This document shows positions 6,901 through 57,739 of a DNA stretch of 64,000 nucleotides, one piece after another (within the stretch, counting starts at the first letter, position 1; every line of letters begins with the position of its first letter). The stretch is from Dimorphilus gyrociliatus (lineage: Eukaryota; Animalia; Annelida). The stretch spans positions 372,001-436,000 of the forward strand of contig CAJFCJ010000027.1 in NCBI GenBank assembly GCA_904063045.1, written 5' to 3'. The translations under genes and the position numbers were made by a program. The notes under the pieces are model-generated. The model was given only the letters and a program-made list of their open reading frames with translations, was not told the origin of the DNA and did not search any database.

Positions 6901-7820
6901 GAAAATTTAAATAGCCAACTGGAGTATAAATCATTAAAATTCAATTGTATATTTGCATCCAAGTAGAAGGATATAAACATTAAAATGTATATTCATTTAT
7001 ACAAGTATTACTATTATTTCCCGAAGATGGCGGCACGCAGAAAGATAACTAGAGCAAAAGCTAGATTATTGAAAAACCTTGCGGGAAACCATATATAGTT
7101 TTATTTACATATACCGAAAGACGGAGATAGGCAGATGAATACTTTTCCTATATTTAATACAATTTCTATTCATTATGTATATTTTTCATTTGTTTAGGTA
7201 CAAATTGGAGTTGTTGTTTTACTGTCCTTTAGAATTTTTCTACTAAATGTGGCCGGAAACATTCCAAAAACGTCGGATCACATACCTCTCTTAGGTAGTT
7301 TCTTTAAAAATTGAAAGGCATAGACTCACTATTAACTTGAATTTATTTTCTTATAGGCGTCTATTTAACGGCTACGATGGCAATAACTACATTGTCTATG
7401 ATTCTAACTGTTTTCGTCTTAAATTTACATTATGTTACCGAGAAGCCGTTATCACCGTTTGTAAAGAGGTTGATGCTAGTATACGTAGCCAGAATGTTGG
7501 GAATGTGCTCAATAGAGAATAAACCATCAATAAATGGTAAATTTAGAAAGAGGAGAATGTCTGTTGACTTTGAAAGTAACAATTTAGTTACAAAGTCTCG
7601 TCAAGTAAGTTCAAAGGTTAGCGAAAGAATTGCTTTGCATTCAAAATCGTCAACAAGCTACGAAAAATACGAGGAAAATGATGATAAAGTTTCAGACTAT
7701 TCCCAAGATTGGAAAAGACTAGCTCAAGTGTTTGATAGACTATTCTTTTACTTATTTCTTTTAGCTATTTTAATTAGCACACTAATTTTATTTCAACCAT
7801 TGACCCGCCGTCCAAATTAG
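3976..7820 (+). CDS. nicotinic acetylcholine receptor-like Cys-loop ligand-gated ion channel subunit, non-alpha type (no vicinal CC), 450 aa
   Basis: 11 phase-consistent GT-AG exons: 3976-4039, 4129-4191, 4250-4323, 4433-4477, 5524-5633, 5706-5854, 5997-6109, 6317-6449, 6519-6559, 7198-7294, 7357-7820. Signal peptide MRSTNLLLQLLLIAMTA; WxDxRLxW and LWRPE motifs; Cys-loop CQIDITYYPFDEQTC; loop B FGAWSY; LRRRHTFYVLNVILP into M1; M2 GQKVQIGVVVLLSFRIFLL; PKTSDHIPLLG; M4 preceded by DWKRLAQVFDRLF. The 45-bp and 110-bp exons are typical of nAChR genes. Confidence 0.95.
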
Positions 7821-9412
7821 ATGTTTTTATTAAAAAAAAAACAAAGAAGAGACAAAAGAAAAAGGAGAGTCTTATCTGTTTCTTTTTGTAAACATAAGAT
7901 CTTATTAAATAATAAACGAAATATACTAATTAATAGTAATTTCTCCCTTTATTCTTATAATACAGTTTGTTATTTCTTTATCATTTTAGGTATTTAGAGG
8001 TTAACTAAGAGTTTATACACAGGTCAAAAATGTCACGAATGTTACCTATAAATATAAAAGGTGTACAAAATTTCCTAATTCGTAATATCTAATTCTTTAA
8101 TAGATAGATATAATTTCTATTTTCTATTATTAATCCATTCTAAATTGGCGTTAATCGTGATGGACTATATTTATTTTTACCTAGAAACATTCCAAACATT
8201 CAATCTAAGAACAATGCTTAAATATACTTCACTATAAATATTCTATATATTTAGTTCTGAAGAACGACAAGTCTGTAATAATCAAAAATCTTCAAACGTA
8301 TTGATGTATAAAGATAAAAGTGAGAAATTGTTTTGCAATGATTCAAATGTCCCTCATTCAACTTATAGGCTTATAGACAGTACTAATTTTTAAATAACGG
8401 TGGCCTATATCAAAGTGATAACAAATGTAGAACGACACGAATATACTTCTTCGTATAAAGAGTTCATTTACTCTTTTAACATCGCAATACGTAATTAGTA
8501 TTTATTTAGCTTATTCCATTCAACTTTCATGATAATAATTCATTGTTAAAATGTTTGTCCAATAAACGTTGAATTTATTTAAGGCGGAAGTCGTAAACCA
8601 AAAAAACATCATTGTCAGCAATTAAAAACAAAGGAGAAAATGACTAAGCAAGGCAACGAATTAGAAAAAAAGGCACATCCTTACAAAAAATAGTCAAAAG
8701 TCAATGAAATAACGTTTTTGAAATAGAAAACTATAACATAAATTAAAATGTAAGCAGAAAATATTCAAAAAGAATAAAACAACAGTTCTATTATTTGTTG
8801 GGTTTCTTTCAATATTTGATTGCAGTTGTTTGCTAAAAAGAAATAAAAATGTCTGAAAGCACTTTTAGTAGAAAACCTTTGAACGACTTCGAGATAAAGA
8901 AACTATGTTTTTTAACTTTTGCTATCTCCTACACAAAAATTAATCATCTTCTAAACGGGAAAAACCTATTGTTTAAGATTCTAAACAACACGTATTATAT
9001 CGAGTTTATATAGAATAATAGAGAAATGAAAGAATACATTAAATAGGTATATAGTTCATCATATTCATCTATTTTTTGAATATATTTTTAACCATTTACA
9101 AGGCTTATAAAAAATGTATTACCACAGAAAATATGAATCACAAAGCAACCGTCAAATTACGTCATAAAGACGGAAGTAAACTACTTTTTTCAAGTTTATT
9201 TGAAACAAACTACTTTTACAACTATATTCAATTAAATTCTTGTCAACGTAATGATTAATAACCTCTTATAAAATTTTTTTATATATCTGATGCATGAAAA
9301 CTCGTAGAAAATATGCAAAGATAATATATTAGCATATTAAAGGTGTGGCGCTTATGATATCTTATCAAAACTTTACTAATTTCTATAGGCTAGCTGCGCT
9401 CTCATCTAAGTG

Positions 9413-9419
9413 TATAAAA
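9413..9419 (+). promoter_or_regulatory. candidate TATA box of Cys-rich gene 1 (same motif at 17012-17018 for gene 2)
   Basis: TATAAAA about 60 bp upstream of ATG 9474. Position is compatible with a core promoter but there is no TSS data, and the sequence is AT-rich. Confidence 0.4.
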
Positions 9420-9473
9420 AGGCAGCAGACTGCATTAGAACACATATCAACTCGAGGAACACTCATATCAACA

Positions 9474-10824
9474 ATGGTCGCAATCAAACTTTTAATACTA
9501 TGCTCAGCTGTTGCTGTAGCTTTAGGTAAAAGAATATCTTCTTTATGTTTTCTTTAACTTCTACTCTATTCTCTTTACTTGCATCTTTCATTCTTCTCTT
9601 TCTTTATAGCAAAAATTGACAATGGTAAAACGTGTCTTCGAATGAAAAGTTATTGTGTTGAGAACGCCGAATGCAAAGGGTAACTTTAGTATTTTTAACT
9701 ATCATTTATACATATGTATACTAGTATACTAATATACTATATACATTCAAACAATGTTCTTTTACGGTTATTAGCAATATCTTTATTCTATTATATTTTT
9801 TTAGAACTGAAGATTCAAAATGGAACTGTTTATTAGGAACATGCGAATGTAAGAATGGTTACTTTCCAAAGTCACCTACAGAATGCGCTAAATATAGTAT
9901 GTCATCATTGTTATAAAAAAAACACGTTCATTTTAATTAATAATATATCCTATAGAGGACTTTGGTGAAACATGTACCGGTAATGGAGATAGGTGTAATA
10001 CTAAAAATTTGATTTGCGATACTACTTGTAAATGTAAAGACGATAAATTTGAAATAGACGGTACTGGATGTAAACTTAAAAAAAATGAAGAGAAAGAACT
10101 TAAAGATGCCTGCACAGAAGATTTGCAATGTGTTAAAGGTAATGAATTTGAAGTAAACTTAACGTTATATATTGAAAATTCACTTTGAAAATAATAGGTC
10201 TTGCAAAGGGTTCTGCTAGTTGCCAGGGAGGAACTTGTAAATGTCTTCCGCCTTGGACAACTGTTGGTAAAACGTGTGTAAATCAAGAATATGATAAATC
10301 CTGCAAAGATGCAGATACAGCAAGTGAAAAATGTAGACGAGGAACTGAAAATCTTGAATGTAAGAGCGATAAATGCGTCTGCAAAACCGATTTTAAATAT
10401 AACGCACGAGTAAAGAAGTGCCTGCACAAAGATTGTAAGTTTGAATTATTGATATTAATATTATAAATTAGCAGATTGTATATTTGAATATTGATATATT
10501 TTGCTAATTTGAATAGCTAGAGAGAATAGGAAGGAAGGAGAAACTTGTTCACCTGCAATCATCGCAGACAACACAAAATGGGATATTTGTGAAAATAAAT
10601 TTGTCTGCAGAAAATGTTCAAGTGACACCTCTGCTGATGGATTCTGTGTTGATGGTAAGTGTTGGAAGAATAATTATCAATTTATAACAAATGATTAATA
10701 ATTGTATTATCATTTCTTTTTCTCAGTCAATAAAGTCAATCCGAATAATTGTAATGGATCAGCCAACATTTCTGCAAGCGTTGCACTACTATTGACAGCC
10801 GTTTTAGCTTTTTTGGCTTACTAA
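9474..10824 (+). CDS. Cys-rich EB/EGF-like-module surface protein, GPI-anchored, cluster gene 1 (289 aa)
   Basis: Exons 9474-9525, 9610-9679, 9805-9896, 9956-10138, 10198-10434, 10517-10654, 10727-10824 (intron phases 1,2,1,1,1,1). Signal peptide MVAIKLLILCSAVAVAL; repeated C-x5-8-C-x-C-x4-C-x-C-x8-12-C modules; C-terminus NCNGSANISASVALLLTAVLAFLAY* (small residues, spacer, terminal hydrophobic tail = GPI-signal-like). Confidence 0.92.
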
Positions 10825-11604
10825 TTAAGTAGTAAGAACAATGGTTATAGAATTATAAATGATTGTATTTTTTGTACAATTTCTATGTAAAAGAGAGAAT
10901 TTTGTGTTAATATTTTCTACTGATGTTTAATGAATATGACAAATGCACTTTTGAAATAAAATTTAAGATTGAAGAAGAAGAGTGATATTTTTAAGAAAAT
11001 AGTCAGAGTGCATTTTGATGATTTCATTAAACGATTGAAGTTTAATAATTTAATAAATTATTGTATGAATAAAAAAATAAACAAATGAAAAAGAAATATG
11101 AATCTATATTTAAACTTGATGAAACGAGAGAAATATGTTGTTTTTTAACAAAGATAAGACTTTTATTCGAAATTATCAAGATAATTAAAAACATTCTTTT
11201 CCTTTCACTGAATAGATATATATATATACTATTTAAAGAAATATCGCCTATTATTGGTACTTTTATTCTTTGGTTCTCTATCTCAATTCCTGATTGATTT
11301 TATTCCTAATTTATTGTTTATTCCGAAAAGTACGATCTATTTTAGTGTTCTTCATAGGTATTTCTCGTTTGTTTGTTTTTCTTTGTTTTATACTTAGACT
11401 TGTTGTTCAGGACGAGCTTGGTCAGGTACAAAGACTTTATCAGTAAGATAACAACTAATGGATAAGTTTGAACTTGGAATATATTACAATTTGCGTTGCA
11501 TGAGAATAAGAAAATATATTTCTTTTTTTAAAGCTGTATTATTTGAAAATAGAATTATTCAATTATTACAGTTTTTTTCATAAATAACTAGGCAACAATA
11601 CAAC

Positions 11605-12370
11605 TCAGAAGCAAGGTCGACAAGAGCAAGACTTTGGCCATTTAATTTTTGCCCATTTAATTCTTATTTCCTTCAATTCTTCATCGTAGCATCTTATCAT
11701 TAACTTTTTCGTTTCAATTTTTGTTGGAACGCAACAATTACAATAGCTAGAGAAGAACAAATAATGAAAGAGCATAAGAAATTACAATTTAGAATATGAT
11801 AAAGAACACCAAGCAATTCCTTATATAGCTATTATATATTTCCTATTTTTATTATTCACCTGTCGTAGGTTTTGTTGGCCATGTTCAGTTCCGTATAGGA
11901 TCGACATTTTCCACTACAGGCCGTTAAAAGTGTTTTTTTTATCTAGTTTTATAATAAAACAGCATGGAAAACAAAGAAAAAAACCGATTTTATTAGTCAG
12001 GTTATATTTTTGTTGTACTAAAATGTTTACTTATTGCCACCACCTGTTTGATACTATTAGAGTTCTTATTTTACCTGACATTTGGAGACTTTAATTGTAT
12101 AGATAATCCTTTTTGGTCGGCAAGAGTTGGAGGATTGTCTTTGTCCATCGAGTAAACTCGCGTATAACAATATATAAAATGCATAAAATAGAATTTTCTT
12201 CTGAAAAAAAGTTGTTAAAAGAAATGAAAGAAAAGAAAGGAAAAGAAGAGAAGAATGAAACAGATAAACGAAGCTATTCAATTCTTTTCCTTTTAAATAT
12301 AATATGACAGTAATACCAAAAATGTATATATATATATTTATATAATATATTTAATACTAACTGAGAACAT
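11605..12370 (-). CDS. secreted 11-Cys cystine-knot protein, bursicon-alpha-like (also Norrin/CTCK-like), 119 aa
   Basis: Minus-strand exons 12370-12362 (ATG TTC TCA|gttagt, least certain), 12200-12075, 11942-11860, 11746-11605; phases 0,0,2. Protein MFSKKILFYAFYILLYASLLDGQRQSSNSCRPKRIIYTIKVSKCQIKKTLLTACSGKCRSYTELNMANKTYDSYCNCCVPTKIETKKLMIRCYDEELKEIRIKWAKIKWPKSCSCRPCF*. Cys spacing 13-9-3-16-CxCC-13-20-CxCRPC matches insect bursicon alpha as recalled. Confidence 0.88.
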
Positions 12371-15334
12371 TCTCTTCCTCTTTCGGTTATTAGGTAACTG
12401 AGATAGTGATGTAACAGGTAATATATTCGGTATTTTCGTTAAGCATTTAATAAGTAATAGTAGTTCATTAAGTATTTTGACATTTGTTAAGAAGATAAAC
12501 AAAATGAAAAGTAAAAGTTAATTATATAGTATAACGGATCGAAAGGAGTAGGAAGCAGAAAAATCAAATGTCTCTTCTCTATATATGTAAATGGAGGGGA
12601 GGTTGGTAGAGGTTTACAAAATACGAGATATTTATAGAACAAGAAAGTAGTTCACTTTAAATCATTTCTATATTTTGATTAAACTATTACTCTATCTGGT
12701 ACAGTGTTTTCTTTGTACAAAGTTTATCACTGCGTCAGCTAAATAGGTTGTTTACTAGCATAGTATCACAATCTTGGCATATTTATTCATAAATAAATAA
12801 ATAAATAAATATATATATATATATAAAACTGAACATTTGGCAGAAATAATGACGAAGAATCAGCTTATAAAGTATATTAGTTCTTTCTCTCATGTTATTT
12901 TTGTAAGAAAAAAACATAAGATAATATCATAGTCTTGATGAAACTTTTGATGGCTATCAGATAATTGAAATCAGATTTTTTAGTTTAGTTTGAATTTTAA
13001 CGAAGCTAAAACAAGACCGACTAGACAGATCATACCAATGACATTTAGATAAGATTATAAATTCCTACTTTCTGCAGAAATTTTATTCTGATTGTTGAGT
13101 AAACATTGATTAGATATATATTCGGGCAAGACAAAAGTTACTTGATATACAAAACGTCAATCAGTATTTATCTTTAAAAGAGTAAAACAATAAAAGCTTT
13201 AAAACGAATTTGTATTAGTATATAGATACTTGTTCACTTGTATATAATCTATATATATATATATATATATATATATTGTATAAACAAATTTCCCCTCTTA
13301 AGAAGAAATTTATCTTCTTTACTACTATTACGAAATTTTGATCTGAAAAATGAATATACTTGTCTTTTATTTATGCAGGTGAATCATTCTTCTTATATTT
13401 AATTAAGCCTTATCGTACACTGGTTAATTGTTTAGCAAGGGATAACAAAAGAAAAAAAAAAAGAGAATTTATCACCTTGATAAAAATACTTAATTAAGGC
13501 TTTTGGGCTACAAGTAGCTTATTGTAAACTGATCAATTATCTATATTTTCAAAAGGTACAAATATGAAACAAATATCCTCCTAGGAAACTGCGATAACGC
13601 TACATTTTTATCTTTCTTCTTCCGAATGAATATGTTCGGTTTTCTATAACAAAATCAATCCTATTTCATGAAGACTTTTAATAATACGCAAACATGGCAC
13701 TATCTAATTTATAGGTTATTCCCATCTCTTATTTTATCTTCAAATTTTAGCTTCCGCTCTATGATAAAAAGTTGTAAAATAGAAACTAAAGATTCGTATA
13801 TCAGTTTAGGGGGAATGAAAGTACTATTTTTATCTCAAGAAATTAAGAGATAGTAACAGGAAGAAATAAAAGCAGAATGAAATATGTCTTTTTCCAGCTG
13901 GAATCTAAAAAACTGTAAAATTTAGTCAATCACTTTCACGTTTACTCTTTATAGTGACATCTTGAGGATAATCTTAACATTTTAACTTTTAAACTTCTAG
14001 TGTTCAGCAGTTGTCTACTTGAGTCTTAGCTTAAGATTAACTAAAGCAGGTAAAGATAGTAGACCATTTGGTGAAGAAATATTTTATCGTATTTAATGTA
14101 ATTGTTTTGGATAGAAAGTATCTCAAGGGTCAATTTCTTAACTTTCTATTTTTAGATAGTCAAAGTTCTACAGCATAAATATAAATTGATGAGAAAAGTT
14201 AAATATACCAAAATGAAATTTGTAGGCATACATTAAATGATAAGCTGTACATTCTCTTCAAATAGTTTTCAAGAGAACAAACATCCTACAATCAAAATGG
14301 CTGATTTATAAAATTGAACAGACTTTTTTGGATAATTTCTATAATTTATCTTTCCCATTTTCTCATTGATATACATTAATTCATTTATTATCTTTTACTT
14401 CCTGAGATAATGACTTTTCTAGATTTAACAAACTTATTTGCTAGTATTCCATTTTTTTTATCTAGCTAGATATATTGCCACAGGTTTATTGTAGATAAGA
14501 TTTAGCTACATTTTACACCTGAAACGTTTTTATTTATTCAAAGAATAGTAAAAATGTATATCATATAGAAATGAAGTGAATTCTATTTAAATAATATCTC
14601 TTTATTAAAAATGATATATAGTTGTTGTCACAAGAGTGACATCTATATTATTTTATGAAATTACTATAATTTCATAAAAGAAATTAAATGATTTTGAAAG
14701 ACAACACTTACTTAATTATGTAAATTATATTTTCTCTATTTTCTCTAGTATTAAACAATACAGTATACTAGATATACTAGAATATTATTTCTATTATAAA
14801 TATAGAAGAAACTTCAAAGTAATTATCAATTCAGCGTTATGTTAAATTTTCTATTGTTGATCATTTATTAGTTAAAAGTCGTTGAGAAATAAATGGACAG
14901 GTAGACTACTTTCACTGATCAATATCAAATAGAATACATGGAAATTGAAGTTATTATTGTTTTAAGATCCTTTTCATAAAGAAACAAGAGAAACAATGAC
15001 TGAGGTTGATTGTATCAATTAGTAAATTATTTACTCCATCTACATTCTTTATTAATAATCATATCTTGTCAGGAGTGCAGTATAGAAAAATCTTATATCA
15101 AACTGTTTGCACTATCAATATCGTCAAACATAGTTTTATATTATCTTTTTACTTCCCTGGGCTTGTTAAAGTTTTAATTAGATTAACTGAGGGATCCGAA
15201 CGTTCTTCAAGTATAGCCATTTTTTTTTATTCATCTAATGACAAACTTTTCTGAGTTACAGTTGCTATATCTGGGTATTCCATTGCGACTATTTGTCTCC
15301 CTGCCACCTCTATTTTGTACCTTGGTGCGGTATA

Positions 15335-16171
15335 CAGTAATCCGCATAAATTTTGGAACACCCTAAATTTTGATAGGCCAAATTTAAAATAACGGTCAAA
15401 AATGTTTTTTCCCACGAAAATAGTTGTTTTTGTCTAAATTTATATAGATAAAGAGTAATATTTACGTAATATTGAAAAAAAATTGAGAAAATGATGATAT
15501 TTGGGAATATTATTAGTAAAATATTTTTCATAATTAAGAGCAACAGCAAGGGTTTTGTGGATGGCACCATCATCAATTAGCAATATTCTATGATACAATC
15601 CACCAGAACAGGAGAATAGGGATCGTCCAAAGAGACTTACAGAGAGAGACATAGGCAGGATGAAAGAATAATAAAGAAATTGAAAATAAATAAGGAAAGG
15701 TGATAGCAGGAAAAATTTTTACAGGAATTAAAAGTAGATGTAAGCATAGCAACTATTCAGATGGAGCTGAAAAGACAAAATTTCAAATATGAATGAGTGA
15801 GACAAAGACGTGACCTCACATCCAACAATTGCGAAAAAAGAAAAACATATTGCCTTAAAATGATCAGTGATAATCTAGACTGGTCTAAAGTAATTTTCAC
15901 CAACGAGGCTAGATTCTCACTGAGTGGCCCTGATGACTTCAGAACATGGACAAATCATAGTGAAAAAAACTTCAGGGTGACGAAAAATATGGGCAGAGGT
16001 AGAGTAATGGTTTGGGGACTCATAGCATCTGATGGAATATTTGAGATATGGAGCATAGAGAAAAAACTGAATGCTGACAACTATAGCAGTTTTATTGTTG
16101 AAGATATTCTGCCTGTAATAAAAGATATATCAGCTAAAATGGGGAGGCAGTACATCTTCCAGCAAGACAAT
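15335..16171 (+). mobile_element. Tc1-like DNA transposon remnant (left end plus truncated, inactivated transposase)
   Basis: TA|CAGTAATCCGCATAAATTTTGGAACACCC left TIR at 15335. HTH-like LRATARVLWMAPSSISNIL and DRPKRLTERD (GRPR-like) with stops and frameshifts; WSKVIFTNEARF (first catalytic D changed to N), GRVMVWG, YIFQQDN. Truncated immediately after QQDN; no right TIR found. Confidence 0.9.
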
Positions 16172-16315
16172 GATAAATCCTGCAAAGATTCAGATACACC
16201 AAGTGAAAAATGTAGACGAGGACTTGAAAATCTTGAATGTAAGAATGATAAATGTGCCTGCAAAGCAAACTACTTTTACAACTATATTCAATAAAATTCT
16301 TGTCAACGCAATGAT
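16172..16315 (+). pseudogene. exon-5 remnant of a sixth Cys-rich cluster paralogue, fused in frame to the Tc1 transposase
   Basis: DKSCKDSDTPSEKCRRGLENLECKNDKCACKANYFYNYIQ*NSCQRND aligns with exon 5 of genes 1 and 2 (DKSCKDADTASEKCRRGTENLECKxDKCVCK...C..KD) but differs from both. Contains a premature stop and the splice donor is lost. Confidence 0.85.
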
Positions 16316-16386
16316 TAATAATCTCGTATAAAATTTTTTTATATATCTGAAGCATGAAAACTCATGGAAAATATGCAAAGATAATA

Positions 16387-16923
16387 CAGTACCGATAGCC
16401 TAAATTTGAACACCATTCTTTTTATGAAAATTAATTTTTTTCAACTTTGGCCTAAGCAAGTTGTTTTTTAGAGAAATTAAAATGAAGACAGAATTATCTA
16501 TCTTTACTTGAGAATTATAAAAGCTGTATTTAATACAAACTAGATAAGAAAAATATGTCTTTTCATCAACGAGGTGTTTAAATCGATTTTTCTATATTTT
16601 TTAAAATAAGAATAATGAAGTTGCAAAAGGTAAAAATGAAAATCATTTTGCAACAGTGTTAGATAATTTGTGAAAATTATTCTTGAACATTTATCACTTA
16701 CAACTTTTAATTAATTAACCAATTTAGTCAATTTTTGCATAAATCAATAATTTTCTTATTTCTATTGTGATAAACAAAGATTTTATAAATTTCGCTTAAA
16801 GATAGATAAGCTGTCCTTATTTTAACTTCTCTTTAAAACATTTTGTTTAGGCCAAAAAAAAGAAAAATTCATTTTTGTAAAAAAAAAAAGAAAAAAGTAT
16901 CTAAAAATAGGGTATCTGTACTG
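16387..16923. mobile_element. 537-bp non-autonomous Tc1/mariner-type element (MITE) with TA target-site duplication
   Basis: TA|CAGTACCGATAGCCTAAATTTG ... CTAAAAATAGGGTATCTGTACTG|TA. Imperfect inverted similarity extends about 80 bp (ttggcctaa/ttaggccaa). The paralogous empty site at 9320-9333 (gataaTAtattagc) has a single TA. No coding capacity. Confidence 0.93.
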
Positions 16924-17072
16924 TATATTAGCATATTAAAGGTGTGGCGCTTATGATATCTTATCAAAACTTTACTAATTTCTATAGGCTAGCTGCGCTC
17001 TCATCTAAGTGTATAAAAAGGCAGCAGACTGCATTAGAACACATATCAACTCGAGGAACACTCATATCAACA

Positions 17073-18367
17073 ATGGTCGCAATCAAACTTTTAATACTAT
17101 GCTCAGCTGTTGCTGTAGCTTTAGGTAAAAGAATATCTTCTTTATGTTTTCTTTAACTTCTACTCTATTCTCTTTACTTGAATCTTTCATTCTTCTCTTT
17201 CTTTATAGCAAAAATTGACAATGGTAAAACGTGTCTTCGAATGAAAAGTGATTGTGTTGATAACGCCGAATGCAAAGGGTAACTTTAGTATTTTTAACTA
17301 TCATTTATACATATGTATACTAGTATACTAATATACTATATACATTCAAACAATGTTCTTTTACGGTTATTAGCAATATCTTTATTCTATTATATTTTTT
17401 TAGAACTGAAGATTCAAAATGGAACTGTTTATTAGGAATATGCGGATGTAAGAATGGTTACTTTTCAAAGTCAGCTACAGAATGCGCTAAATATAGTACG
17501 TCATCATTGTTATAAAAAAAAACACGTTCATTTTAATTAATACAGTGTCTTTTAGGGGACTTGGATCAAGATTGTTCTAATACTGCTGGTGACGGAAAAC
17601 TATGCGATCCAGGCAGAAATATGATGTGCTATGCTGCTATTTGTAAATGTAGAAACGATAAATTTGAAAGAGACGGTACTGGATGTAAACTTAAAATTTC
17701 TGAAGAGAAAACACTTAAACAGACCTGCACTGAAGATTTGCAATGTGTTAAAGGTAATGAAATTGAAGTAAACTTAACGTTATATATTGAAAATTCACTT
17801 TGAAAATAATAGGTCTTGCAATGGGTTCTGCTAGTTGCCAGGGAGGAACTTGTAAATGTCTTCCGCCTTGGACAACTGTTGGTAAAACGTGTGTAAATCA
17901 AGAATATGATAAATCCTGCAAAGATGCAGATACAGCAAGTGAAAAATGTAGACGAGGAACTGAAAATCTTGAATGTAAGAACGATAAATGCGTCTGCAAA
18001 ATCGATTTTAATTATAACACACGAGTAAAGAAGTGCCTGCACAAAGATTGTAAGTTTGAATTATTGATATTAATATTATAAATTAGCAGATTGTATATTT
18101 GAATATTGATATATTTTGCTAATTTGAATAGCTAGAGTGAATAGGAAGGAAGGAGAAACTTGTTCACCTATAATCATCGCAGACAACACAAAAAAAGATA
18201 TTTGTGAAAGTAAATTTGTCTGCAGAAAATGTTCAAGTGACACCTCTGCTGATGGATTCTGTGTTGATGGTAAGTGTTGGAAGAATAATTATCAATTTAT
18301 AACAAATGATTAATAATTGTATTATCATTTCTTTTTTTCAGTTAACAAAATCAATTGTAATGGATAA
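17073..18367 (+). CDS. Cys-rich EB/EGF-like-module protein, cluster gene 2 (270 aa); TAA before the GPI tail predicts a secreted form
   Basis: Exons 17073-17124, 17209-17278, 17404-17495, 17556-17753, 17813-18049, 18132-18269, 18342-18367. Ends VNKINCNG* (TAA 18365-18367, TCA in gene 1). The hydrophobic tail remains open to TAA 18428-18430. Confidence 0.88.
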
Positions 18368-19061
18368 ACCATCATTTCTGCAAGCGTTGCACTACTATTG
18401 ACAGTCGTTTTAGCTTTTTTGGCTTACTAATTAAGTAGTGCGAACGATATAAATGAAATGTTGATGCTTATAGTTTATCAGTGAAATTTTATAAAAGTCA
18501 TAAACAGTGTTAATTATAAGATTAAAGAAGGCATAAAAAGATTTACGAAATTGTAAGTTGTTTGTTAATTATTACACGTTAAAGTTGGAAAAGAAACAAA
18601 AGATACGATTCTTTTTCTTCCTACACAGGATTACTATCTGTATCATATTTTTGACGTTTTTTATTTTATTAAACAAGCTTTATCTGAATTTTGTCTTTGT
18701 TAGTATTCACAATTCAACAAAATTACTTTATCTTCAGATAAGGAGGGTTATAGAATAGACAAATAACATCTTTGAACGCTCTAATTGAAAATATATTCGT
18801 ATGAGTCATAAAAAATGTTCTTTATTCGTGAAAAACATCAGAGGAATATAATATAAGAAAAGAAAAACAATCAACATTTACCTATCTAATTTGCGTTAAA
18901 ACAGGAATTCGTGTTCAGAAATGAGTTTAACGACAATAAAATTATCTTTAATTAGTTGTAAAGTTAGCTTAGGAAATTACAAAGCGAATTTATGAATATA
19001 TACTTAATTAAATATTTATAAGAAATAAACTTTTAAATAGATTAATAATTTAATTGTTTAT

Positions 19062-20330
19062 TCAGCAAAACATTCTTCTAATAACCATAAAAATAATAGT
19101 TAGAACTATAAATTCATTAATCACACTGTTTTTTAGGCCTGAGTTTTTCGGAGGTTTTGTGTCATCTTCTAATAAAATAGAATTATTTTCTTGTATATTA
19201 CAAGTACAGTTGGATTGAAATTGAATAAAATCTAACCGTTTACGCAACGATCTTTTAGTTTTGCGTCATCAGAACAACCATAACAAAAGAATTCCGTCTT
19301 ACATAATTGAACAGGGTCTGCTTTACCTTTTGGTACAGGTGTACAAGTTTCCAAATAATCTCTATCAATAACGGCTGTTGAATGATTTTTTTAAAATAAA
19401 TAAAACACTATTAATTGAATATGAAACTCTATAAAACCCACAGCCTTCCTTTAAACACATATTTCTCTTCCATGTAAAAGTTGATTTACACTTGCATACT
19501 TTGTCCTTACACTCCATATTTTTATCTTCAGTTCCTCTACACTTCTCCGACGATTTGCCATCCTGACAAGACTCCCCATAGTTTTGTTTAACGCATTTAT
19601 CACCAACAGTTGTTGCGTCAAAATAACATTTACATTTGTTGTCTTGACAGAAAGCGTTACTTAACCTATCTAAAGTATAGAACTGATAAATCCATTGATT
19701 AGTTTTAAAGACTTTATACTTACCTTTACTACATTCATCGCTATTCTCACAAGTTTCGCCAAGTCCTTTTCTAGCCGAATTCTTTAAAATACATCCTTTC
19801 GGATTTTCTCCATCAGGTTCGTAATTTTCTTTACAAATGCACTTTTCATTCTCACATTGCAGTTTAATAGCTTCATAGCACATTTTTTTAGCATTATCTT
19901 TTTCGCAGTCTTCTCCTAAAGTTTCTATTTAATTGAAATAAGTTTATTGAAATGAATTAAATACTGTACATTCAAAATTATTCATACAAACTTAATTTAT
20001 GACATTGATTTCCATCAATCGAAAAATCGAATTTACAAAGACAAGTTCCATATCTACATATCGAAATAGCATTACCAGTTCTGTGAATATTATTTGAATA
20101 AAATAACATTATTATAAGACAATCTTATATTCAAATTCTAACTGCACACAAGTTGAATTTGGTACTTTACAATCATTTTGTTTTACTTCACATCTATCAT
20201 TTAAATTTTCATTTCCTGAAAAAGATAACCCATTCGTTAAAAGTTTTAGTAAGATATAAATAATTTAATTCCTTTTACCGTAAGCGTAAAATGACATGAT
20301 AAATAGACAAATAACTTTTAGAAGAAACAT
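19062..20330 (-). CDS. Cys-rich EB/EGF-like-module surface protein, cluster gene 3 (295 aa)
   Basis: Minus-strand exons 20330-20279, 20215-20143, 20080-19992, 19924-19724, 19669-19442, 19374-19237, 19168-19062; same phases as gene 1. Signal peptide MFLLKVICLFIMSFYAYG; hydrophobic C-terminus SVINEFIVLTIIFMVIRRMFC*. Confidence 0.9.
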
Positions 20331-21172
20331 AGTCAAAATGAAAATTTTCAATATCTGTAAAAGATATAAAGATATATAAGCTTTATATATTGCTATATTA
20401 ATTTATAGAAAAATGAATAATCCTGTTGTAAAAGAAGGCTATTTTTAAAAAGTGCTAATACAAACTATAAATGTTAATTTTTCAAGTATGCAATATATTT
20501 GGGGTCATCTAGTTCACTGTAACAATCTTATACTATATCTCTTTATTCCCTTTAAGAAGAATAATAAAACTACCTTCGTTCTCTATAGCTCTCAGTTAAA
20601 TCAAAATGATCGACTTAAAGACTAATGAATATAAAATATTCTATCAAACATTAGAATGAATTTGAATAATTAAACTAATGCGCAATAACAAAACGGTAAC
20701 TCACCTATACTCGACGTGCTACAGTAATGATTTATAATACACTTCTTATCTGATAACCAACAGATGATAACAACCAGTAATACGTGAAATAATCATAATT
20801 TTGCGAAAATAGCAAAAACTTGAGCTATATTTATACCTTTTAAAAATAGATATAATAAAAATTAAACAAGAATTATACTATTTAACTCTATTTATATGTA
20901 ATTTCGACCCAAAAAAACCACTTTTTAAAGGTTTATTGGCAATAAAAATATATTTCTTGATAACGAAAGTATATATATATATATACAGTATATACAATAT
21001 GTTGCAAATTTATCTGAATTTTATTCATTCACGTTAGGAAGACGACTTGTACTCAAAAGGGTTAGAAAAGATACTCGTACTATTAATATAAGGAAACATT
21101 TGTTCTAGTTACTAAAAAATAAAGAAATTAATAATTAGCATCTTTAAAAGTTTAACTAAATTATCTTGAAAA

Positions 21173-22445
21173 ATGATCAAATTAATTATATTATTTTTGA
21201 TATACTACTCTCCTTATCTGAATGCATGTAAGATATTATTTAATATAGTTATATAGAAATACAATATAAATGGTTATTAATTCAAAATTATAGCTTCTCA
21301 ATTCAAGATCTATGGAGATTTATGCGAATCTGATAGGAATTGTACAAAAGAATCATCAGTGTGTCTCAAGTATTTACATAATATTCCTTTGTTAAAATTT
21401 TAGTTAACTTATACTATTTATTATTAAATGTTTTAGGCTTGCACAGGATGAGGCGAGACAATGCAAGATAGGATATTGCGCCTGTGCTAATGGTTATTAT
21501 ATGTCGGAGGAAGAATGCAAGAAACAGAGTGGGTACCTTCTATTTTCTAAATACGTTTTATCTTATTTCGTTAAAATATATTTAGAAAGTTATAACGAAA
21601 ATTGCGACAAAGATATAGCTTGTGCCAGAAACTTAGTGTGTGTGAATAATAAATGTGCATGTAGAGATTTATTCGAAAGAGATCCTTCAAACCCTTCTTC
21701 TTGTGTTTTGAAAGAGAATGAAAAAAAAGCACTTGGGGAATCATGTCTTGCTAGCGTACAGTGCGTTAAAAGTAAAGTATTCTATTTATATAAAAATCTT
21801 AATTATCATTAAACATCTTATTTAAAAACTAGATGGATTAAAGCATGCCGCATGTTTCATCTTTCAATGCAAGTGTGCTGTATCTTATACAACAGTTGGT
21901 GACAAGTGTATTGAACAAAAATACGATGATAACTGTAAAGATGGTACTATATCCGAGAAATGTAAAGGACTTGGAGACACCAATATGATGTGCACAGCTA
22001 ATGATATTTGCAAATGTAAAGATGGTTATGAACGTAAAAGAAATGGTTGTTTTAAAATCGGCTGTAAGTTGATAGTAAAAATAGATGATTGTACAACATT
22101 ATCCATATTTTCTACTGTTCTATTCATATTTTGAATGATTCATTTAAGGTAGTGCCATCTCTTGTCTCTCGTGAAGTTTAGAGTGGTAACGATAAAACAG
22201 TGTTTCCAGTTTCCTGAGTAGGAAAACAGATTAAGTCTGTTTGGAGGTGATGAAAGATATGAAGAAATTTGCTATGGCAAAAATGCTACAATCTTAGTCC
22301 AGATGTATTAATTAAAAATCCTAAAAAATTCTATTATAAAAGGCGTTTGAACAAACAGACGTTTATATGGTCGCTCTCTTCAGTTAAAAAACCTAATAGA
22401 AGTAACAAAGAAATGTCATAATTTTAAAAATTGTAGTTTTTAAAC

Positions 22446-22482
<37 letters not shown>

Positions 22483-23097
22483 CACACACACACACACACA
22501 CAGAGAAGAAAAACAATGCTATAAACCAACAATCATGTGTATTTTTCCCATGTTTATAAAAACAGAATTCAAGTATGTCACAACAGACTAAGCATACTAT
22601 TATTTACCGGTTTCTAGTACTAAAATATAAGAGATTTTTACCTAGAAGTCATTATTTTCTATTAATTAAATTACTTAACAATTCTCTTTTTTCCCTACTT
22701 TGCCAAGTAATTATATTATTTATGAAATAATTTTAATATACGTATTTTATTATTACTTATCAGGTAATAATTAAATAACTAGTTCTCTTTTTATGTCATT
22801 TTCCAGCCATTTATGATAGAGATGTTGGTGAAAGTTGTTCTATACACGACATAGGAAATATTAATCGTGTAGCAATGTGCAAAGAGGATTCAGTTTGCCA
22901 GGTTTGCTCACACAAACCTACTAGTCTTCCAAAATGTGTTAGAAGTAAGTTAATCGAAAGAGCAAAGTGTATGAAACTAAAAATTTTTCTTTTTTAAATC
23001 CACTGTAGAAAATGAATCAGAAAATTCAAGTGAATTAGTACTACCAAACATTGGAACAATTCTATTTTCTGGATTATTTTATCTGTTTAGACTATGA
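21173..23097 (+). CDS. Cys-rich EB/EGF-like-module surface protein, cluster gene 4 (288 aa)
   Basis: Exons 21173-21227, 21294-21369, 21437-21528, 21586-21771, 21833-22063, 22807-22944, 23009-23097; same phases. Signal peptide MIKLIILFLIYYSPYLNA; tail NSSELVLPNIGTILFSGLFYLFRL*. Confidence 0.9.
22446..22502. repeat. compound (AG)n(AC)n microsatellite in intron 5 of cluster gene 4
   Basis: Read directly. Other long dinucleotide tracts include (TC)n 26109-26142 and (TA)n 46146-46177. Confidence 0.95.
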
Positions 23098-23752
23098 TTT
23101 ATCAATTCTGTTTCTTTTCATCAATTATTCTAATAAAGAGAAAGTTTCTTTTATTTCATTACATTTAAAATTTAAAGTAGTTTAATTATAAAAATAATCA
23201 ATAGAGCAAATAGTCAACGGTGTATGTAGTGACTTATTTAGCTTGTTGTTTATAGGAAAACAGTGAGGTGAATGACCATTAGATTATCATCTATTTGCAT
23301 AATTTCCAAATAGATTTCATCACTGTCCTTTTTATAAGGGAAAATCGTATAATCATTAAAGACATGTATAAAGACAATAAATCTCTCTTTCTATTAGACT
23401 ATTGATTAGTTCTGATCAAAATTTAAGTTTTAGTTTCCCCTTAATGGAGCGTTAATATTTTTTATTCACTGTTCTGATAAGAAGCTATATTTACTGTCAA
23501 AAATGGACTAATGTTAATGTTACAATCAATTTAGTACTTGACATTATCACTATTCACTAATGAATATCATTTTTTTCATATATATACTGTGTATATCATA
23601 AAGGATAGTAAACTTTAAATGGAAATCTACTAGCAAAACTAAGGCAACGAGATTTGGAAAAGAACGTAATAAAACTTACTTTTATTGATATAAATATTTA
23701 ACAAGTAACATCTTACGCTTTTCAGATTAATATTTAATTGACTATTTAGAGA

Positions 23753-25047
23753 ATGATGGTTTATTTCTCTATATATATCTTTTTGAGTACAGTGTCAATT
23801 GTTATAGGTTAGCTTGAAGGGGAAAATGTATATTTTCTTGTAATTCGTAGACTATTTAAATATTTTATTATTTTTTAAGCAAAAAGTCATCTTGGAGAAG
23901 TTTGCAATCTGCAGATTGGTTGTGCTGATGGTAGTGGATCTTGTAACCAGTAAATAAGGAGTTAATTCTAGTTTAAAATTATTACTAATAGCTTAAAATG
24001 AATTATAATAATTTGTTTATGAATAGATATGGTTCGGATTACACTAACAAGTGTAAATACGGTGTATGTACATGCGGCAGCTTTAGTAATCAGGTTGATG
24101 ATAAATGCTACTCAACTAGTATATACTTATATAAAATTACATCTACAGTATACCTATTATATCTTTGTCATATTTAGAGACTTTTAATCAGAGTTGCGAG
24201 TTGGATAATCCTAAAAATGAATGTAGGAAAGAATATCATCTATTCTGTAATGATAGTATATGTATTTGCGATAAGGGATACGAACAAAATATGATAAATA
24301 TGAGAAAATGTTATATAAAATCAAGTCAAGCGAAACGTTTAGGTGAAAAATGTAAGCATGCGGATGAATGTGTTAAAGGTAAAGAAGTAATTTAAGGTAT
24401 TTGCCTATAGGAATTTATCAACTAAGAATGTTTTACAGGCAGACTACGAAATGCAACCTGTAAAGACGGAAGATGCGTTTGTAAAGCGCAATACACAACA
24501 CACGGCTTTAGATGTATAAAACAAGAACACGGCCAATCTTGTAAACATGGTAGAGAGGGAGAAAAATGTAGAGGAACACTCGATAAAAATTTATTATGTA
24601 CGAATAATATTTGTTTATGCAAAATGGATTATATATGGATACTAGGATTATGTTTAAAAAAAGACTGTTAGTACATAAAGTTTTAATCAATTTCATTCAC
24701 TTTTCTTTAATTGTTATATAAAAAAATCCTTTTTCCACTAGCTGTCTTTAACAGAACGTTTAGTCAAAGTTGTACAGCAAAACCGAAAGGCAGAAGCAAA
24801 CCTGTTCAAATATGTAAATCTGGGTTACTTTGTCAAAAGTGTAACTATTCCCCCCTAAGACCCCGCTGTGTAAGAAGTAAGTTATTATTCTATAAAACAC
24901 GATAGATGAACTATAGATAATCTCTATACAACAATTTTTATAGCCGATGAATCAATCTCGTCCTATTCAGAAAATTTGAAAGCAGCAGCAAGCGATACTT
25001 TAAATATTTTTCAAATTGGAATGATTTATTATTTCATATTTATTTAA
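23753..25047 (+). CDS. Cys-rich EB/EGF-like-module surface protein, cluster gene 5 (294 aa)
   Basis: Exons 23753-23807, 23880-23949, 24027-24118, 24178-24378, 24439-24666, 24742-24876, 24944-25047; same phases. Signal peptide MMVYFSIYIFLSTVSIVIA; tail AAASDTLNIFQIGMIYYFIFI*. Confidence 0.9.
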
Positions 25048-26104
25048 ATACCTTTAAAGTCTTTAATAGTTTGTAACAGTTGATTATTACACAATTACAT
25101 ACTGTATATATATACTGTATATATTTATATACGGTATATTAGTATATATGTTGTTTATACTGTTTTTTTTAATGTGTATATGATGTAATTAGTGCAAAAT
25201 ACATTACTCTAATAAGATCATATTACTTAAGAAAGTCTATCCTGATGTTCTTGATTATTAGTAGCTTGATAATAATGCCTAATTAAAATAATATCAAGAA
25301 AAAGACCTTGTCCTATAACCCAGCTTCTTCCACAGCAAACATATTTAAGGAGAAAATCTACACCGTAAGCTTTAATAGTGGTACGTTTTTTATTTGTTAT
25401 ATAGATGTATATTTACAGTTTTACAGTTTTATAGAAAAACAACACCATTCACTCGTTATTGTTAATATATAAAATAATTTGTATAAACTTAATTATCATT
25501 CACTTAAAGGAATAATAGAAAAAGAGAGAGAAATATAATAAACTCTTCAGTGTAAGAGAAGTTATATTCTTCCCTATTTTACAGCATCTCAAAAATATTT
25601 ATTACTATAACATTTCATGAAAGATTAAAGCAGGAAACAATGTATTTTCTATTAAATAGCTAACTAACTAAATTAAAGGTGTACCATAATTTTTTTTAAA
25701 AAAAACACCAATTAGAATGTTTAATATTTACGGTAAAAGGTATTTATTAAAGGTAAAAATCTATTTTCGTCAATTGACAATTATTCTTTTTGAATAAGGA
25801 ATAATAGAAAATTTTCTAATTCGCTTTAAGTTGTTTAATAATTGTTAGGGAAAAAGAAACAAAACAACCAATTATTGAAAAACATGAACAGAAGACTTTT
25901 TATTATAAAGAAAAGTCAAAATTTATTAAAAAATTGATATAATTATTGAAAAGAAGAAACTTGAATAATATCTCTGGTAATAAAGACAAACTGAAATATA
26001 AAAATAGCTATTATTAAAGATTAGTAATAATTTAAAGTTTTCAACTTCAAACAGCTGTATACATCACGCCTTGAGGAGAAAGGAAAATTTTTCCATTTTG
26101 TCTG

Positions 26105-36164: not shown

Positions 36165-36734
36165 TTATTTTGTTTCGGCGCAATATCCGATATAAGTATT
36201 CCAGGCTAAACCAACAATGTTTATCAAGAAAATTCTGTACTTTAGAGGAACGTAGTGAAAGTTTAATATTTGAACCACCGGCCAAATTTGATAGCTGTTG
36301 ATAAGGAGAGGGCTAAAATCTCTTGTAATTTTTTCATTGATTTCCTTAAATTTTTCATTTCTCAAAGCTCCCATAACACCAATATAACCTCCTAAATAGA
36401 CTGGTAGAAAAACTAATTGATCTAATAGAGTCTTTTTTGTAGCTGCTTTGAGACATTTCTTTGGTGTTATGATAACTTTATCCAACCATCTATACCAATA
36501 GTGCATACTAGGTCCAGCTATAAATAAACCTACAAATCCAAACCGAATAGTTCTCTGTGCGTCATAGTCTTTAAAAGATTTTTTTTCTATAAAGATCTGT
36601 GCTATTAGATCACCTGCACTCATTAAAACGCAAGTATTTAAAGCTGTTTTCGTGCAACCAGAGGTTTTTTCGTAAGAAATGACTATCCTTCGTCCTGTCA
36701 GTGGAAAAAACCTTTCGAAAGCTCTTAATAGCAT
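36165..36734 (-). CDS. MPV17: Mpv17/PMP22 family mitochondrial inner membrane protein, single exon (189 aa)
   Basis: Motifs LMSAGDLIAQ, YDAQRTIRF, GPSMHYWYRWLD, KTLLDQLVF, YQIWPVVQILNFHYVPLKYR..N.V..WNTY. Assignment to MPV17 rather than MPV17L2 or PXMP2 rests on recalled motif similarity. Confidence 0.9.
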   Translation of the reverse strand: MLLRAFERFFPLTGRRIVISYEKTSGCTKTALNTCVLMSAGDLIAQIFIEKKSFKDYDAQRTIRFGFVGLFIAGPSMHYWYRWLDKVIITPKKCLKAATKKTLLDQLVFLPVYLGGYIGVMGALRNEKFKEINEKITRDFSPLLINSYQIWPVVQILNFHYVPLKYRIFLINIVGLAWNTYIGYCAETK

Positions 36735-39700
36735 TATTCTATAATGAGAGTATCAAAAAAATGTTCAAGTTTAATTAGGAATAATTTCACTTGTCTACCT
36801 TTTAGCAAGTTTGAAGTATTCAAGTACCTTTTAATTGTTGAATATAAGTATATGTGAAAAGACAGGAAGAGAGACATATAAACTGTATGTTTATATATAT
36901 ATATATATATATATAAAATATTTATACATCCGTTAAGAAGTCACTGTTTTTATTTTTTATCAATACTATTGGCGCCATCTAGGTTCATTTTTAGATTACT
37001 TTCACAATAAAAGTTCATTATACATGAAACCCACAAAGAAAGATACAACATTAAGTTATTTAAAAGTATTGGAATGTTTAAACTCATTTGAACGAATAAA
37101 AGACTCTTTGTTTTTGAAACTTTTGCTTTATATCTATACAAAAAAGAAAAACAAGTAAAGCCAGGTTTAGGTCATTAAAAGTTCATTCGTTAACATATGT
37201 ATTGATCAGACCTGTACTGTTTTCTCATCGTTTTCATTCTCTCTTTCTTTCTCTCTCTCTCTCTTTCTCTCTATGCATAAACAGTATATATATATACTCT
37301 CTCCTTGCTTACATTTTCCCTATCTAACTATCCCTAACCAGTTATTACTTTTTATCTCTATTTTAAGTACTTACTTTTCACTAGAAATTTTAATAATAAT
37401 CAGATAATCGATATTTATCTAACAACAAAATATGCTAGTTGAAAAGAAATCATAAAGTAAAAGAGTCTAAAGATAATAGCATATAAATAATTTGCTTTAA
37501 TATTAAATAAACAATTCTTTACACTCGTTGAAATATTGAACAAATTTCTTTTTTCTATTAATAGATAAAGTTGTACTTAATCATTCATTAAGTTGCGTAG
37601 TTCCTTCTCTTTAGGCTATATATAGTAGTATTCTTTCATTTGTCTATTATCTTTCCTTTGGTGTGTGTGTGTGTGTGTGAGTGAGTGTGTATCTCTTCCT
37701 TTTCCCCCCATCCCTCTCTCATCGCTCCCCCTTTCTGCATCTCTGTTTGTATACACTGTATACACATGTATAAATAATATAAATAAATACTTGCTCTACA
37801 CACAGTGTAGTCGTTATTTTATTTTATCTATCTAAATATTATGTTTTTTAATATCTGTTATTATTAGCATATACGTTTATAGAGTTAGTAAGAGAGAATG
37901 ACTTCTATTCGTATATTCGCAGTAGACGAGTATCTCGTAATTCCATCTGCTCTTATGTTCATGCACTCGTTACTTACCCCTCAATCTCTATCTCTATATT
38001 TAACTTTCGTTTTTACTAACTCAACATATTATATTTCATGTAAGGAATACGCCTTCAAATAGTTGAATTTTGACGAGTTGTGATTTTTACAAAGCTTTAA
38101 TTAATGATAATATTTAATTAACTAATAAAGTCTCTGAAGAAATTTGTTTGTCGTTAAGTTCTCATCGAAAAGATGAAAGAACTGAGAAAAACTCACATCA
38201 GGTTAAATAATTCCATTTCCTATTTCTTCAATTTGCTTGATAAAAATATTTACGCTTTGTTAGATTTATTAATAAAAAAACCTGCTAATTATACATAAAA
38301 TACAAATAACAAAGAATTGAAAAACAGAGAATTTGCCAGAAATAGACGATAATTTTTTGGGAGTGATACCATAATTCATATGTAAATCCTTTTGTCTCAT
38401 GTAAAGAAAAGATAATTATCATTCATCTACATCAATTAGTATAGCTTTTTAAAGTAAACCCTCCTTTAATTCTTACTAAATTTATCATACTCTAATTTTC
38501 TTTGTTCAGATTGGTTAGTATAATAGGTTTTCCTTTTTGTTAATTATCGATTTTTACTAATTTTCATCTCCTGCCACCTCTTTATTCTAGATATTTCACC
38601 TGGAAACAATAGAGTAGTGCATATTATTTCTCCAGTTCATTTTCTGATAGAATTATTGCCAATTTATTTGCAAGCAGTTTTCATGAATGAAATTGAGACA
38701 TGTATGAAGAAATGATCGCATAATAAAGCTTAATTATATTAAAACTCTAAATTCTTTTAATGAAAAAAGATAATAGATCTCTGAGAAAAGTGAAAATAAT
38801 AAATCTATTTCATATTTCTTATAGAAAGTGACAGAGAAAGCGTAAAGGGACATATTGGAATTTATTACTGTTATAAAATATATAGAATATAAATAATTCT
38901 ATTTTTCAATAAAATGATATTAAGTTTATTATAGAATAAATTAAATAATTAGGTTCTTTTCAATCTGAATACTATATGCAGTATTATTAATGTTTATACT
39001 GTTTATACATCTACGAAAACAACTCTTTTCAATCTAGCTATTCCATTGGTTTTTGTTGGAATTTTTTTTTATTCTTTGATTAGGTAAAACCTCAATAAAT
39101 ATTTAAATAAACCTAATTATGACAACAAATAGTAGTTTTATCAAGTTTTTCTTTGATTTTCTCTTCCATTCTTTCTACTTTTAATACTGTTAATGAACAA
39201 TGTAAACACTAAAACATATTCAACCTCTTTGCAATTCACATCAATAGACTAAAAATATAATTAATAAAAAGAATTAGGTTCATCATTTTTATTTAATTCA
39301 TATCATATGTAATAGAAACAATCTATTTATAGACGCAGCTGGCAAAAACAGAGGATTACTGAAGAGATATACTTCATATTTCTTTAAAACATTTAAAGGT
39401 AAAATACGTTTTCTATCCATGATATTCGAGTTGAAGAATGCCTCTTTCTTCCTTCTATCAAAAAGAGATGGATATCAAAAGTTTACAAATATTAACTTTA
39501 GGGGAACGAGCATGTAGAATTAAATTACAGTGGAGAGTTGGCTTTCAGTATATTATCAAACAATAGAAATAGATAATTTTGAGGAAATATTTTGCATTGT
39601 TTAATTATCTAGAATAGTATCTTTTACATAAATAGTAGACCATTAATGGCACAGAGATACCTTTTTACTCTTGAAGAAAATATTGGATAAACAAACGAAT

Positions 39701-56800: not shown

Positions 56801-57739
56801 GTGTGTTTTAAAATATCTAAAATATTTATACTTTTAGCCTTTCACTATTAAAGGATTTTCCATTTTGAGAAAAGAAGATCAAGTTTATGAGGAATTACAT
56901 AGAAAGATTTAAAATATAATGATTATAACAGTGTCTTATACATGCTTGATTTCATATCAGCGACCATGAATAGGTAGAACACTTCTTGTTCGTAAATTAT
57001 TAACGGCGAAAAATGCATTAACACTTTTTGCTTTTCATTCTAACCAAATCATGTATGTTTACATGATCAAATACTGTGTCCATAAACAGCTTTCGTTAAA
57101 CGAAGTAATGGTTGCTAAAGCAAATGAAAGTGGGCTTAACTTATTATTTATTATTCCTATTTTTGTTCTTTTTAAAAGCGCATAGGTTTGTACCAATATT
57201 TAAAATTTTATTTCTTTAGACTAGTACTCTCAATTCTAATTATATAACTTTAATTATGTATAAAGAAAAATTAAGGGAGACATTATTTTCTGTATTCATT
57301 TATTTAGCGTATTTGTAGAGAAATAGACAAGAAAAGTTTACATAAGATCAGAAAACTTTTATAATAGTTACAAGTCATATAGGAATATCTAGTATTTGCG
57401 TGAATGCTCGTTTTTTAACGTTTCATTAATGTTTTCCTCCATCTAAGTGTCTTTTATATCCTCTATCTTTTTTTATGATCTTACTGATCACCTTATTCAC
57501 TTTAAAAAACCAAAACAAATAGATTAAAGGATAAGAAATAACTTTGAAATTGCTACCCGAAAATCCTATTCTGTTGTTTAAATAGTAGCGAGTCTTTAAG
57601 TTATATAAACTATAACTTAAGGGTGTAAATTGACAACTTGTGTTGTATAATTGTCTTGGATATTACTTAAAAGTTATCTGTTTATTTAAATAACTTTCTT
57701 TTTGAATGTTATTTATATATAATCAGATTTCAGAACGAA

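Follow-up and report, generated by a model that had tools for sequence, protein, structure and literature searches.

Organisation of the Locus and Products of the Two Genes

The window considered here, i.e., the whole 64-kb stretch of the Dimorphilus gyrociliatus genome that was analysed, lies on a gap-free contig (C27) and is AT-rich, with a G+C content of ~27%. Compared with itself, the window contains one duplicated unit (9325-10842 versus 16924-18448, 93% identity) carrying two genes, namely gene 1 (DgyrCDS13726) and gene 2 (DgyrCDS13727), which are tandem paralogues and are both already annotated. The present work deals with the way in which these copies differ, that is, by amino acid replacements in exons set between nearly identical introns. 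Every intron of the two models (Table 1) is bordered by GT and AG. The gene 1 model encodes a protein of 289 aa matching exactly the database protein P0001 (DgyrCDS13726), while the product of the gene 2 model corresponds to residues 41-310 of P0007 (DgyrCDS13727), which has been annotated from an upstream ATG. In layout, gene 2 differs from gene 1 by 15 additional nt in exon 4 and by 9 nt fewer in exon 7.

In the gene 1 product, a putative signal peptide is followed by a mature part whose 31 Cys are arranged in EB/EGF-like modules, and the C-terminal end forms a hydrophobic tail. Inspected by eye, P0001 displays features of the glycosylphosphatidylinositol (GPI) type, i.e., the N-terminal signal peptide and a C-terminal hydrophobic stretch following small residues that would form a putative omega site. 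In gene 2, an in-frame TAA precedes the hydrophobic tail and removes it from the product, as read from the genomic sequence and from the annotation, P0007 stopping at this very codon. This stop was absent from the first-pass annotation of the locus and came to light on translating the gene 2 model. As this stop lies in the last exon, exon-junction-dependent decay of the transcript would not be expected.

Table 1. Features of the duplicated locus, in positions of the window (UTR, untranslated region; MITE, miniature inverted-repeat transposable element).
Feature	Position	Strand	Partner copy	Remarks
Gene 1 (DgyrCDS13726)	9474-10824	+		7-exon model built from sequence
Exons of gene 1	9474-9525, 9610-9679, 9805-9896, 9956-10138, 10198-10434, 10517-10654, 10727-10824	+		
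Gene 2 (DgyrCDS13727)	17073-18430	+		7-exon model built from sequence
Exons of gene 2	17073-17124, 17209-17278, 17404-17495, 17556-17753, 17813-18049, 18132-18269, 18342-18430	+		
In-frame TAA in exon 7 (last exon) of gene 2	18365-18367	+		from translation; gene 1 has TCA there
Promoter/5'UTR block	9325-9473	+	16924-17072	100% identical; TATAAAA at 9413-9419
Flank U	9203-9326	+	U', 16263-16386	8/124 sites differ (6.5%; 93.5% identity)
MITE	16387-16923	+		537 nt; terminal inverted repeats; TA target duplication; between U' and the gene 2 promoter
Diverged patch	9943-10030	+	~17543-17645	last 13 nt of intron 3 and exon 4a
Third-copy remnant, part of exon 5	16163-16264	+		102 nt; ~90% identical to both genes; fused directly to U'
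Three further EB-module genes of the family	18600-25100			includes DgyrCDS13728/13729 on the - strand, and DgyrCDS13730

Paralogy and Transcription of the Copies

Homology between the copies is limited to 9203-10842 and 16263-18448, with unrelated flanks on either side and 5.3 kb of unique spacer between them on the one contig. Contigs of the DNA run X1 include the upstream context of each copy, and depth amounts to 318-358 over the shared parts and 165-169 over the copy-specific flanks, i.e., ~2:1, a ratio which alone would also fit two haplotypes. Run X2 provided a contig of 965 nt in which all six introns have been spliced out exactly as modelled and which matches gene 1 wherever the two copies vary. 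In run X3, which bears a different organism label, gene-1-type contigs of very high depth occur together with spliced contigs of the gene 2 type. The latter span the exon 3-4 joint (17495/17556) and the exon 6-7 joint (18268/18341) and also cover exon 6. Although provisionally typed as "DNA?" or "?", X2 and X3 are RNA-derived, all introns being missing from their contigs; in the RNA run X6, no contig matched the window.

Both copies thus give rise to transcripts spliced in agreement with the models, those of gene 2 apparently at a lower level, to which the MITE located 149 nt upstream of the gene 2 ATG may contribute. The first-pass annotation had left it undecided whether the variants were sequencing errors and whether the copies were paralogues or mis-assembled alleles. 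The occurrence of both letter sets in spliced RNA contigs establishes that the exonic variants are real and, with the unrelated flanks, that the copies are paralogues. The possibility that the pattern arose because gene 2 is a dead pseudogene was considered and rejected, as neutral decay cannot outrun the rate of the introns, no Cys has been lost, and gene 2 yields spliced transcripts.

Differences between the Copies in Exons and Introns

Over exons 1, 2, 3, 5, and 6, the copies differ at 18 of 589 nt, distributed in 15 codons, every one of which is a replacement (Y>D, E>D, T>I, E>G, P>S, P>A, K>M, S>N, T>I, K>N, A>T, E>V, A>I, W>K, and N>S), the number of silent codon differences being nil. 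These are the very 15 replacements that the first-pass annotation had listed outside exons 4 and 7, recovered here by codon alignment. Its further observations were borne out as well. No Cys is changed, each protein possessing 32 Cys of which 32/32 align. Introns 1 to 6 are nearly identical, with 1, 0, 1, 1, 0, and 1 substitutions, respectively, apart from the end of intron 3, which carries in addition one indel and 6 substitutions in its last 13 nt. The alignable half of exon 4, i.e., exon 4b (37 codons), exhibits 8 replacement codons and 1 silent. The 149 nt located 5' of the ATG show no difference at all (0/149), and noncoding sequence inside the gene differs at 4/617 sites (0.65%).

Within the regions interpreted below as converted, the differences are not dispersed but clustered at 9651-9662, 9840-9875, 10207, 10366-10404, and 10523-10595. 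When polarised with P0002, the nearest relative, and with the three further genes of the cluster (genes 3-5), derived states occur in both copies, examples being E35 for gene 1 and, for gene 2, I53, the second T>I, and W>K. Micro-conversion from other paralogues as the source of the variants was discarded, none of the 30 variant-centred 11-mers being present in genes 3-5 or in the exon 5 fragment.

An Old Duplication Homogenised by Gene Conversion

The near-identity of the introns contrasts with what is found at the ends of the unit. Flank U, the sequence of which occurs at only two places in the genome, namely U and U', is significantly more diverged than inner noncoding sequence (8/124 versus 4/617; Fisher p = 1.4e-4), and the 3'UTR stub differs at 3/18 sites. 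Likewise, the proportion of differing silent sites (pS) reaches 0.078 in exon 4b, where the corresponding proportion for replacement sites (pN) is 12.5%, and 0.094 in exon 7, against 0-0.008 in exons 1, 2, 3, 5, and 6. Divergence steps from 6.5% to 0% exactly at the MITE. This element is 92.5% identical to six copies located elsewhere in the genome, which are 100% identical to each other; being 7.5% diverged from mutually identical copies, it must have inserted long ago, and the duplication is accordingly old as well. Of note, the MITE family is palindromic and its six identical copies sit on different contigs, implying very recent transposition.

The locus thus combines an abrupt shift in silent divergence with an independent marker, the MITE, for a duplication older than the identical tracts. 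From a silent divergence of ~6.5-9% at the unit ends and in exon 4b versus 0-0.65% inside, it follows that the introns were homogenised by conversion. Judged on the pattern of the sequence, the pair is an old duplicate later homogenised by gene conversion in two blocks, i.e., 9325-9942 and ~10113-10726. Between the blocks, the exon 4a patch comprises three codon indels, with pS of 0.43 and pN of 0.35; because it includes intronic sequence and saturated third positions, it corresponds to a DNA-level exchange or to an ancient segment rather than to the outcome of protein-level selection alone. No donor closer to the patch was found in the assembly.

Regarding the differences remaining inside the blocks, three of the four inner noncoding substitutions (9900, 10147, and 10722) are positioned at the edges of unconverted zones. 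In the islands taken as unconverted, replacement density amounts to ~13% by hand count, a value similar to the pN of exon 4b. Old differences that escaped conversion fit these observations better than a burst of new substitutions.

The third-copy remnant of exon 5 was found in contigs of X1, X2, and X3, at low depth in the latter two. An open frame at 15797-16386, Tc1/mariner-like by eye (no Pfam match at 1e-3), runs into this remnant. The left edge of the homology between genes 1 and 2 coincides with the junction between the remnant and U' (~16263), which looks like the footprint of an older rearrangement.

Formal Tests of Selection

Considering the coding sequence by itself, NG86 path counting in exons 1, 2, 3, 5, and 6 gives 119 silent sites (S) with 1 difference (sd) and 466 replacement sites (N) with 17 differences (nd), the single silent step falling within the path TGG>AAA (Fisher p = 0.14). 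Pairwise maximum-likelihood (ML) estimation under GY94 gives a dN/dS ratio (omega) of 4.5, with 2dlnL = 3.1 and p = 0.078 in the likelihood-ratio test (LRT). Over the whole gene, omega by NG86 is ~1.3 (p = 0.42); for exon 4b by itself, omega lies at about 0.9-1.6 (~0.94 under GY94), and it is below 1 for exon 7. The chance that 18 (or 15) changes would include no silent one is 0.002-0.03, depending on kappa. The contrast becomes significant when noncoding sequence is brought in, with 18/589 differences in exons versus 4/617 in noncoding sequence (p = 0.002, or p = 0.01 when counted by codon events), and with 17/466 at N sites versus 5/736 at S plus noncoding sites, i.e., a ratio of ~5.5 (p = 3e-4 to 5e-4). 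In other words, omega = 1 is not rejected by the coding sequence alone, and significance stems from the comparison with introns.

These results bear on the first-pass annotation in two ways. Its case for positive selection would have called for a dN/dS distinguishable from 1, which the codon-only tests do not provide. As to its central argument, according to which exons outpacing introns are the signature of positive selection, the contrast itself stands, but the introns have been homogenised by gene conversion, so that a coding sequence diverging faster than its introns is probably the wrong picture; selection is favoured yet unproven.

The mosaic was further compared with simulations of patchy conversion of old divergence free of selection, the pattern sought being no more than 4 noncoding differences and no more than 1 silent one out of ~22. 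With equal rates for all site classes, it arose in <=0.5% of runs; with replacements pre-set at 1.7x the frequency of silent changes, i.e., an old dN of 12.5%, it arose in 2-3.5% of runs.

Weighing the Explanations

The best-supported account, held here with moderate confidence, is gene conversion together with selection for difference between the copies. The tandem duplication is old, neutral divergence having reached roughly 6-9%. A MITE would then have inserted upstream of gene 2, after which conversion would have homogenised the stretch from promoter to intron 3 and that from the middle of exon 4 to intron 6, erasing nearly all silent and intronic differences. Left inside the blocks are a few short exonic islands holding replacements only, with every Cys kept. 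Selection for differing products may have operated through the purging of conversions that erase functional differences, through new adaptive changes, or through both. Outside the converted blocks lie exon 4a, with the variable loops of module 2, as well as exon 4b and exon 7. The stop codon in exon 7 of gene 2 would leave its product without the putative GPI or membrane tail, so that the pair would consist of an anchored, apparently abundant protein and a soluble, apparently far less expressed one. The evidence suggests selection for, or maintenance of, difference without proving it, and the GPI anchoring and functional split of the pair are likewise inferred.

Several points weigh against this account. 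Besides the non-significance of the tests confined to codons, the differences are clustered and two of them are multi-nucleotide codon changes, which leaves few independent events. Unconverted islands as small as these would be expected to contain only ~2 silent differences, so that finding none carries little weight as evidence. Exons 4 and 7 were left out post hoc, the case was chosen from a genome-wide scan, and the comparison is that of one assembly. The depth of gene-2-type contigs in X3, ~20-50x below that of gene-1-type contigs, is a rough and poor measure of expression.

An alternative, and the one put forward by the first-pass annotation, is de novo positive selection, acting after the pair had either arisen very recently by duplication or been completely homogenised, with replacements fixed at several times the neutral rate. 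The ratio of ~5.5 between N sites and S plus noncoding sites (p = 3e-4) and the ML omega of 4.5 go in its direction, as do the lack of a donor for any variant among the other paralogues and the occurrence of derived states in both copies. Nevertheless, the duplication is not young and the codon-only LRT is non-significant. Moreover, once the three edge substitutions are subtracted, 1 difference is left in ~500 converted noncoding sites, which by hand estimate would raise omega well above 10, an implausibly high value. This explanation is accordingly regarded as unlikely.

Selection might also be dispensed with entirely, patchy conversion having acted on an old, fast-evolving (omega ~1 or higher) and loosely constrained pair, with islands that are exonic and free of silent differences by chance and multi-nucleotide mutations inflating the count. 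Such a mosaic agrees with the non-significance of the codon-only tests, with omega in exons 4b and 7, with the 2-3.5% of simulations that yield the pattern given an old dN of 12.5%, and with TGG>AAA and GCA>ATA as candidates for single events. Since the equal-rate simulation gives <=0.5% and the conservation of all 32 Cys in two spliced and expressed genes implies that neither is freely decaying, it appears doubtful, to much the same degree.

Lastly, it is highly improbable that the copies represent a single gene, duplicated artificially through mis-assembly of its haplotypes or through chimeras of polishing, and this reading was rejected, for although X1 DNA contigs collapse the shared parts and choose variants arbitrarily and the 2:1 depth would suit two haplotypes, the homology is confined to the unit amid unrelated flanks, the copies stand apart on one gap-free contig with unique sequence in between, both upstream contexts exist in X1, both variant sets exist as spliced RNA in X3, and the copies are annotated as separate genes.

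Protein Family, Domains, and Predicted Structure

In the Dimorphilus gyrociliatus assembly (77.9 Mb), which served for genome-wide searches, members of the family occur only in the window. Searching 1.84 billion proteins by HMMER with exon 5 matched only five representatives; the relatives other than genes 1 and 2 are the three further genes of the same cluster and two environmental/Logan sequences. From the sequences available, the family appears restricted to dinophilids. P0002, the nearest relative, is 39% identical, while the DgyrCDS13728/13729/13730 genes are 26-38% identical to gene 1. Within the cluster, DgyrCDS13728 and DgyrCDS13729 are alternative models for one gene, and DgyrCDS13730 is annotated as a single protein of 531 aa fusing two units.

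With respect to the Pfam EB module (PF01683; gathering threshold of 24.3 bits), gene 1 (24.2 bits) and gene 2 (21.8 bits) both score just under the threshold, above which are found the cluster paralogues P0006 (26.1 bits) and P0004 (44.3 bits); single exons searched against the same module gave weak matches. In the ESM Atlas, every one of the closest clusters consists of EB proteins from arthropods (score 0.94). Taken together, the family is probably one of EB-module, cysteine-rich secreted or surface proteins. The module type is probably shared with the EB proteins of arthropods and nematodes ("pqn-25-like"), from which the Dimorphilus family is set apart by the position of gene 1 just below the Pfam cut-off and by the scarcity of its relatives.

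The AlphaFold2 model (predicted local distance difference test, pLDDT, of 73) describes a chain of small beta-hairpin modules with terminal helices at 2-16 and 274-288. Foldseek searches against PDB returned EGF-array matches which were weak and non-significant (E of 0.05 or worse, TM score <0.3). Pfs25/P28 of Plasmodium, i.e., GPI-anchored EGF arrays, present a similar architecture with a signal peptide, small disulfide-rich modules, and a C-terminal hydrophobic signal; as the weak and non-significant best matches in Foldseek and the Atlas, they imply neither homology nor common function. Together with the apparently very high abundance of the gene 1 transcript, the architecture suggests a coat protein, either secreted or located at the surface. 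The genome paper and its supplements make no mention of these genes.

Other Genes in the Window

Elsewhere in the window, a vasopressin/oxytocin-type neuropeptide precursor is encoded at 57671-58327 (+), in which a nonapeptide motif (CFIRDCPPG-GKR) precedes a neurophysin domain (PF00184, E = 3.5e-14); a literature search for this motif gave no match. Exons were also recognised for a Cys-loop neurotransmitter-gated channel (PF02932) at 7341-7817 (+), for a Mpv17/PMP22 family protein at 36168-36752 (-), and for a rhodopsin-type/Srw-like G protein-coupled receptor at 46306-48004 (-).

Comparison with Known Systems and Significance

In the tandem L/M opsin genes of the primate X chromosome, conversion homogenises the introns while selection keeps exon differences at spectral-tuning sites. 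The Dimorphilus pair resembles them in being tandem, in having introns more alike than exons and sharp tract edges, and in residual differences that are replacements. Unlike the opsins, it exhibits more islands, one copy has lost the membrane tail, and it is known here from one species. A second parallel is offered by the phospholipase A2 (PLA2) paralogues of snake venoms and by conotoxins, known for "accelerated evolution", where exons are more diverged than introns, dN exceeds dS, and the Cys framework is kept. Like the Dimorphilus pair, these families comprise secreted proteins rich in cysteine, in which the Cys scaffold is conserved, exon differences are biased towards replacements, and introns are nearly identical. 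In contrast to them, a venom or toxin role is without support for the Dimorphilus pair, its conversion mosaic is demonstrable, and its dN/dS is not significantly above 1.

A more elaborate scenario can be envisaged, though it is improbable in its full form, in which the pair would be an anchored/soluble duo of a dinophilid-specific recognition protein directed, e.g., at microbes, gametes, or the cocoon surface. Module 2 and the islands would be kept different by diversifying selection against continual conversion, and the five-gene cluster would serve as a reservoir for module exchange, the exon 4a patch being one such exchange.

On present evidence, the locus is an ordinary, if tidy, case with moderate statistical support for selection. 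Should selection prove true, it would provide a compact example of the balance between conversion and selection in a spiralian with a miniature genome, at a lineage-restricted and apparently highly expressed surface-protein gene, and it would offer a natural split between an anchored and a soluble form open to testing.

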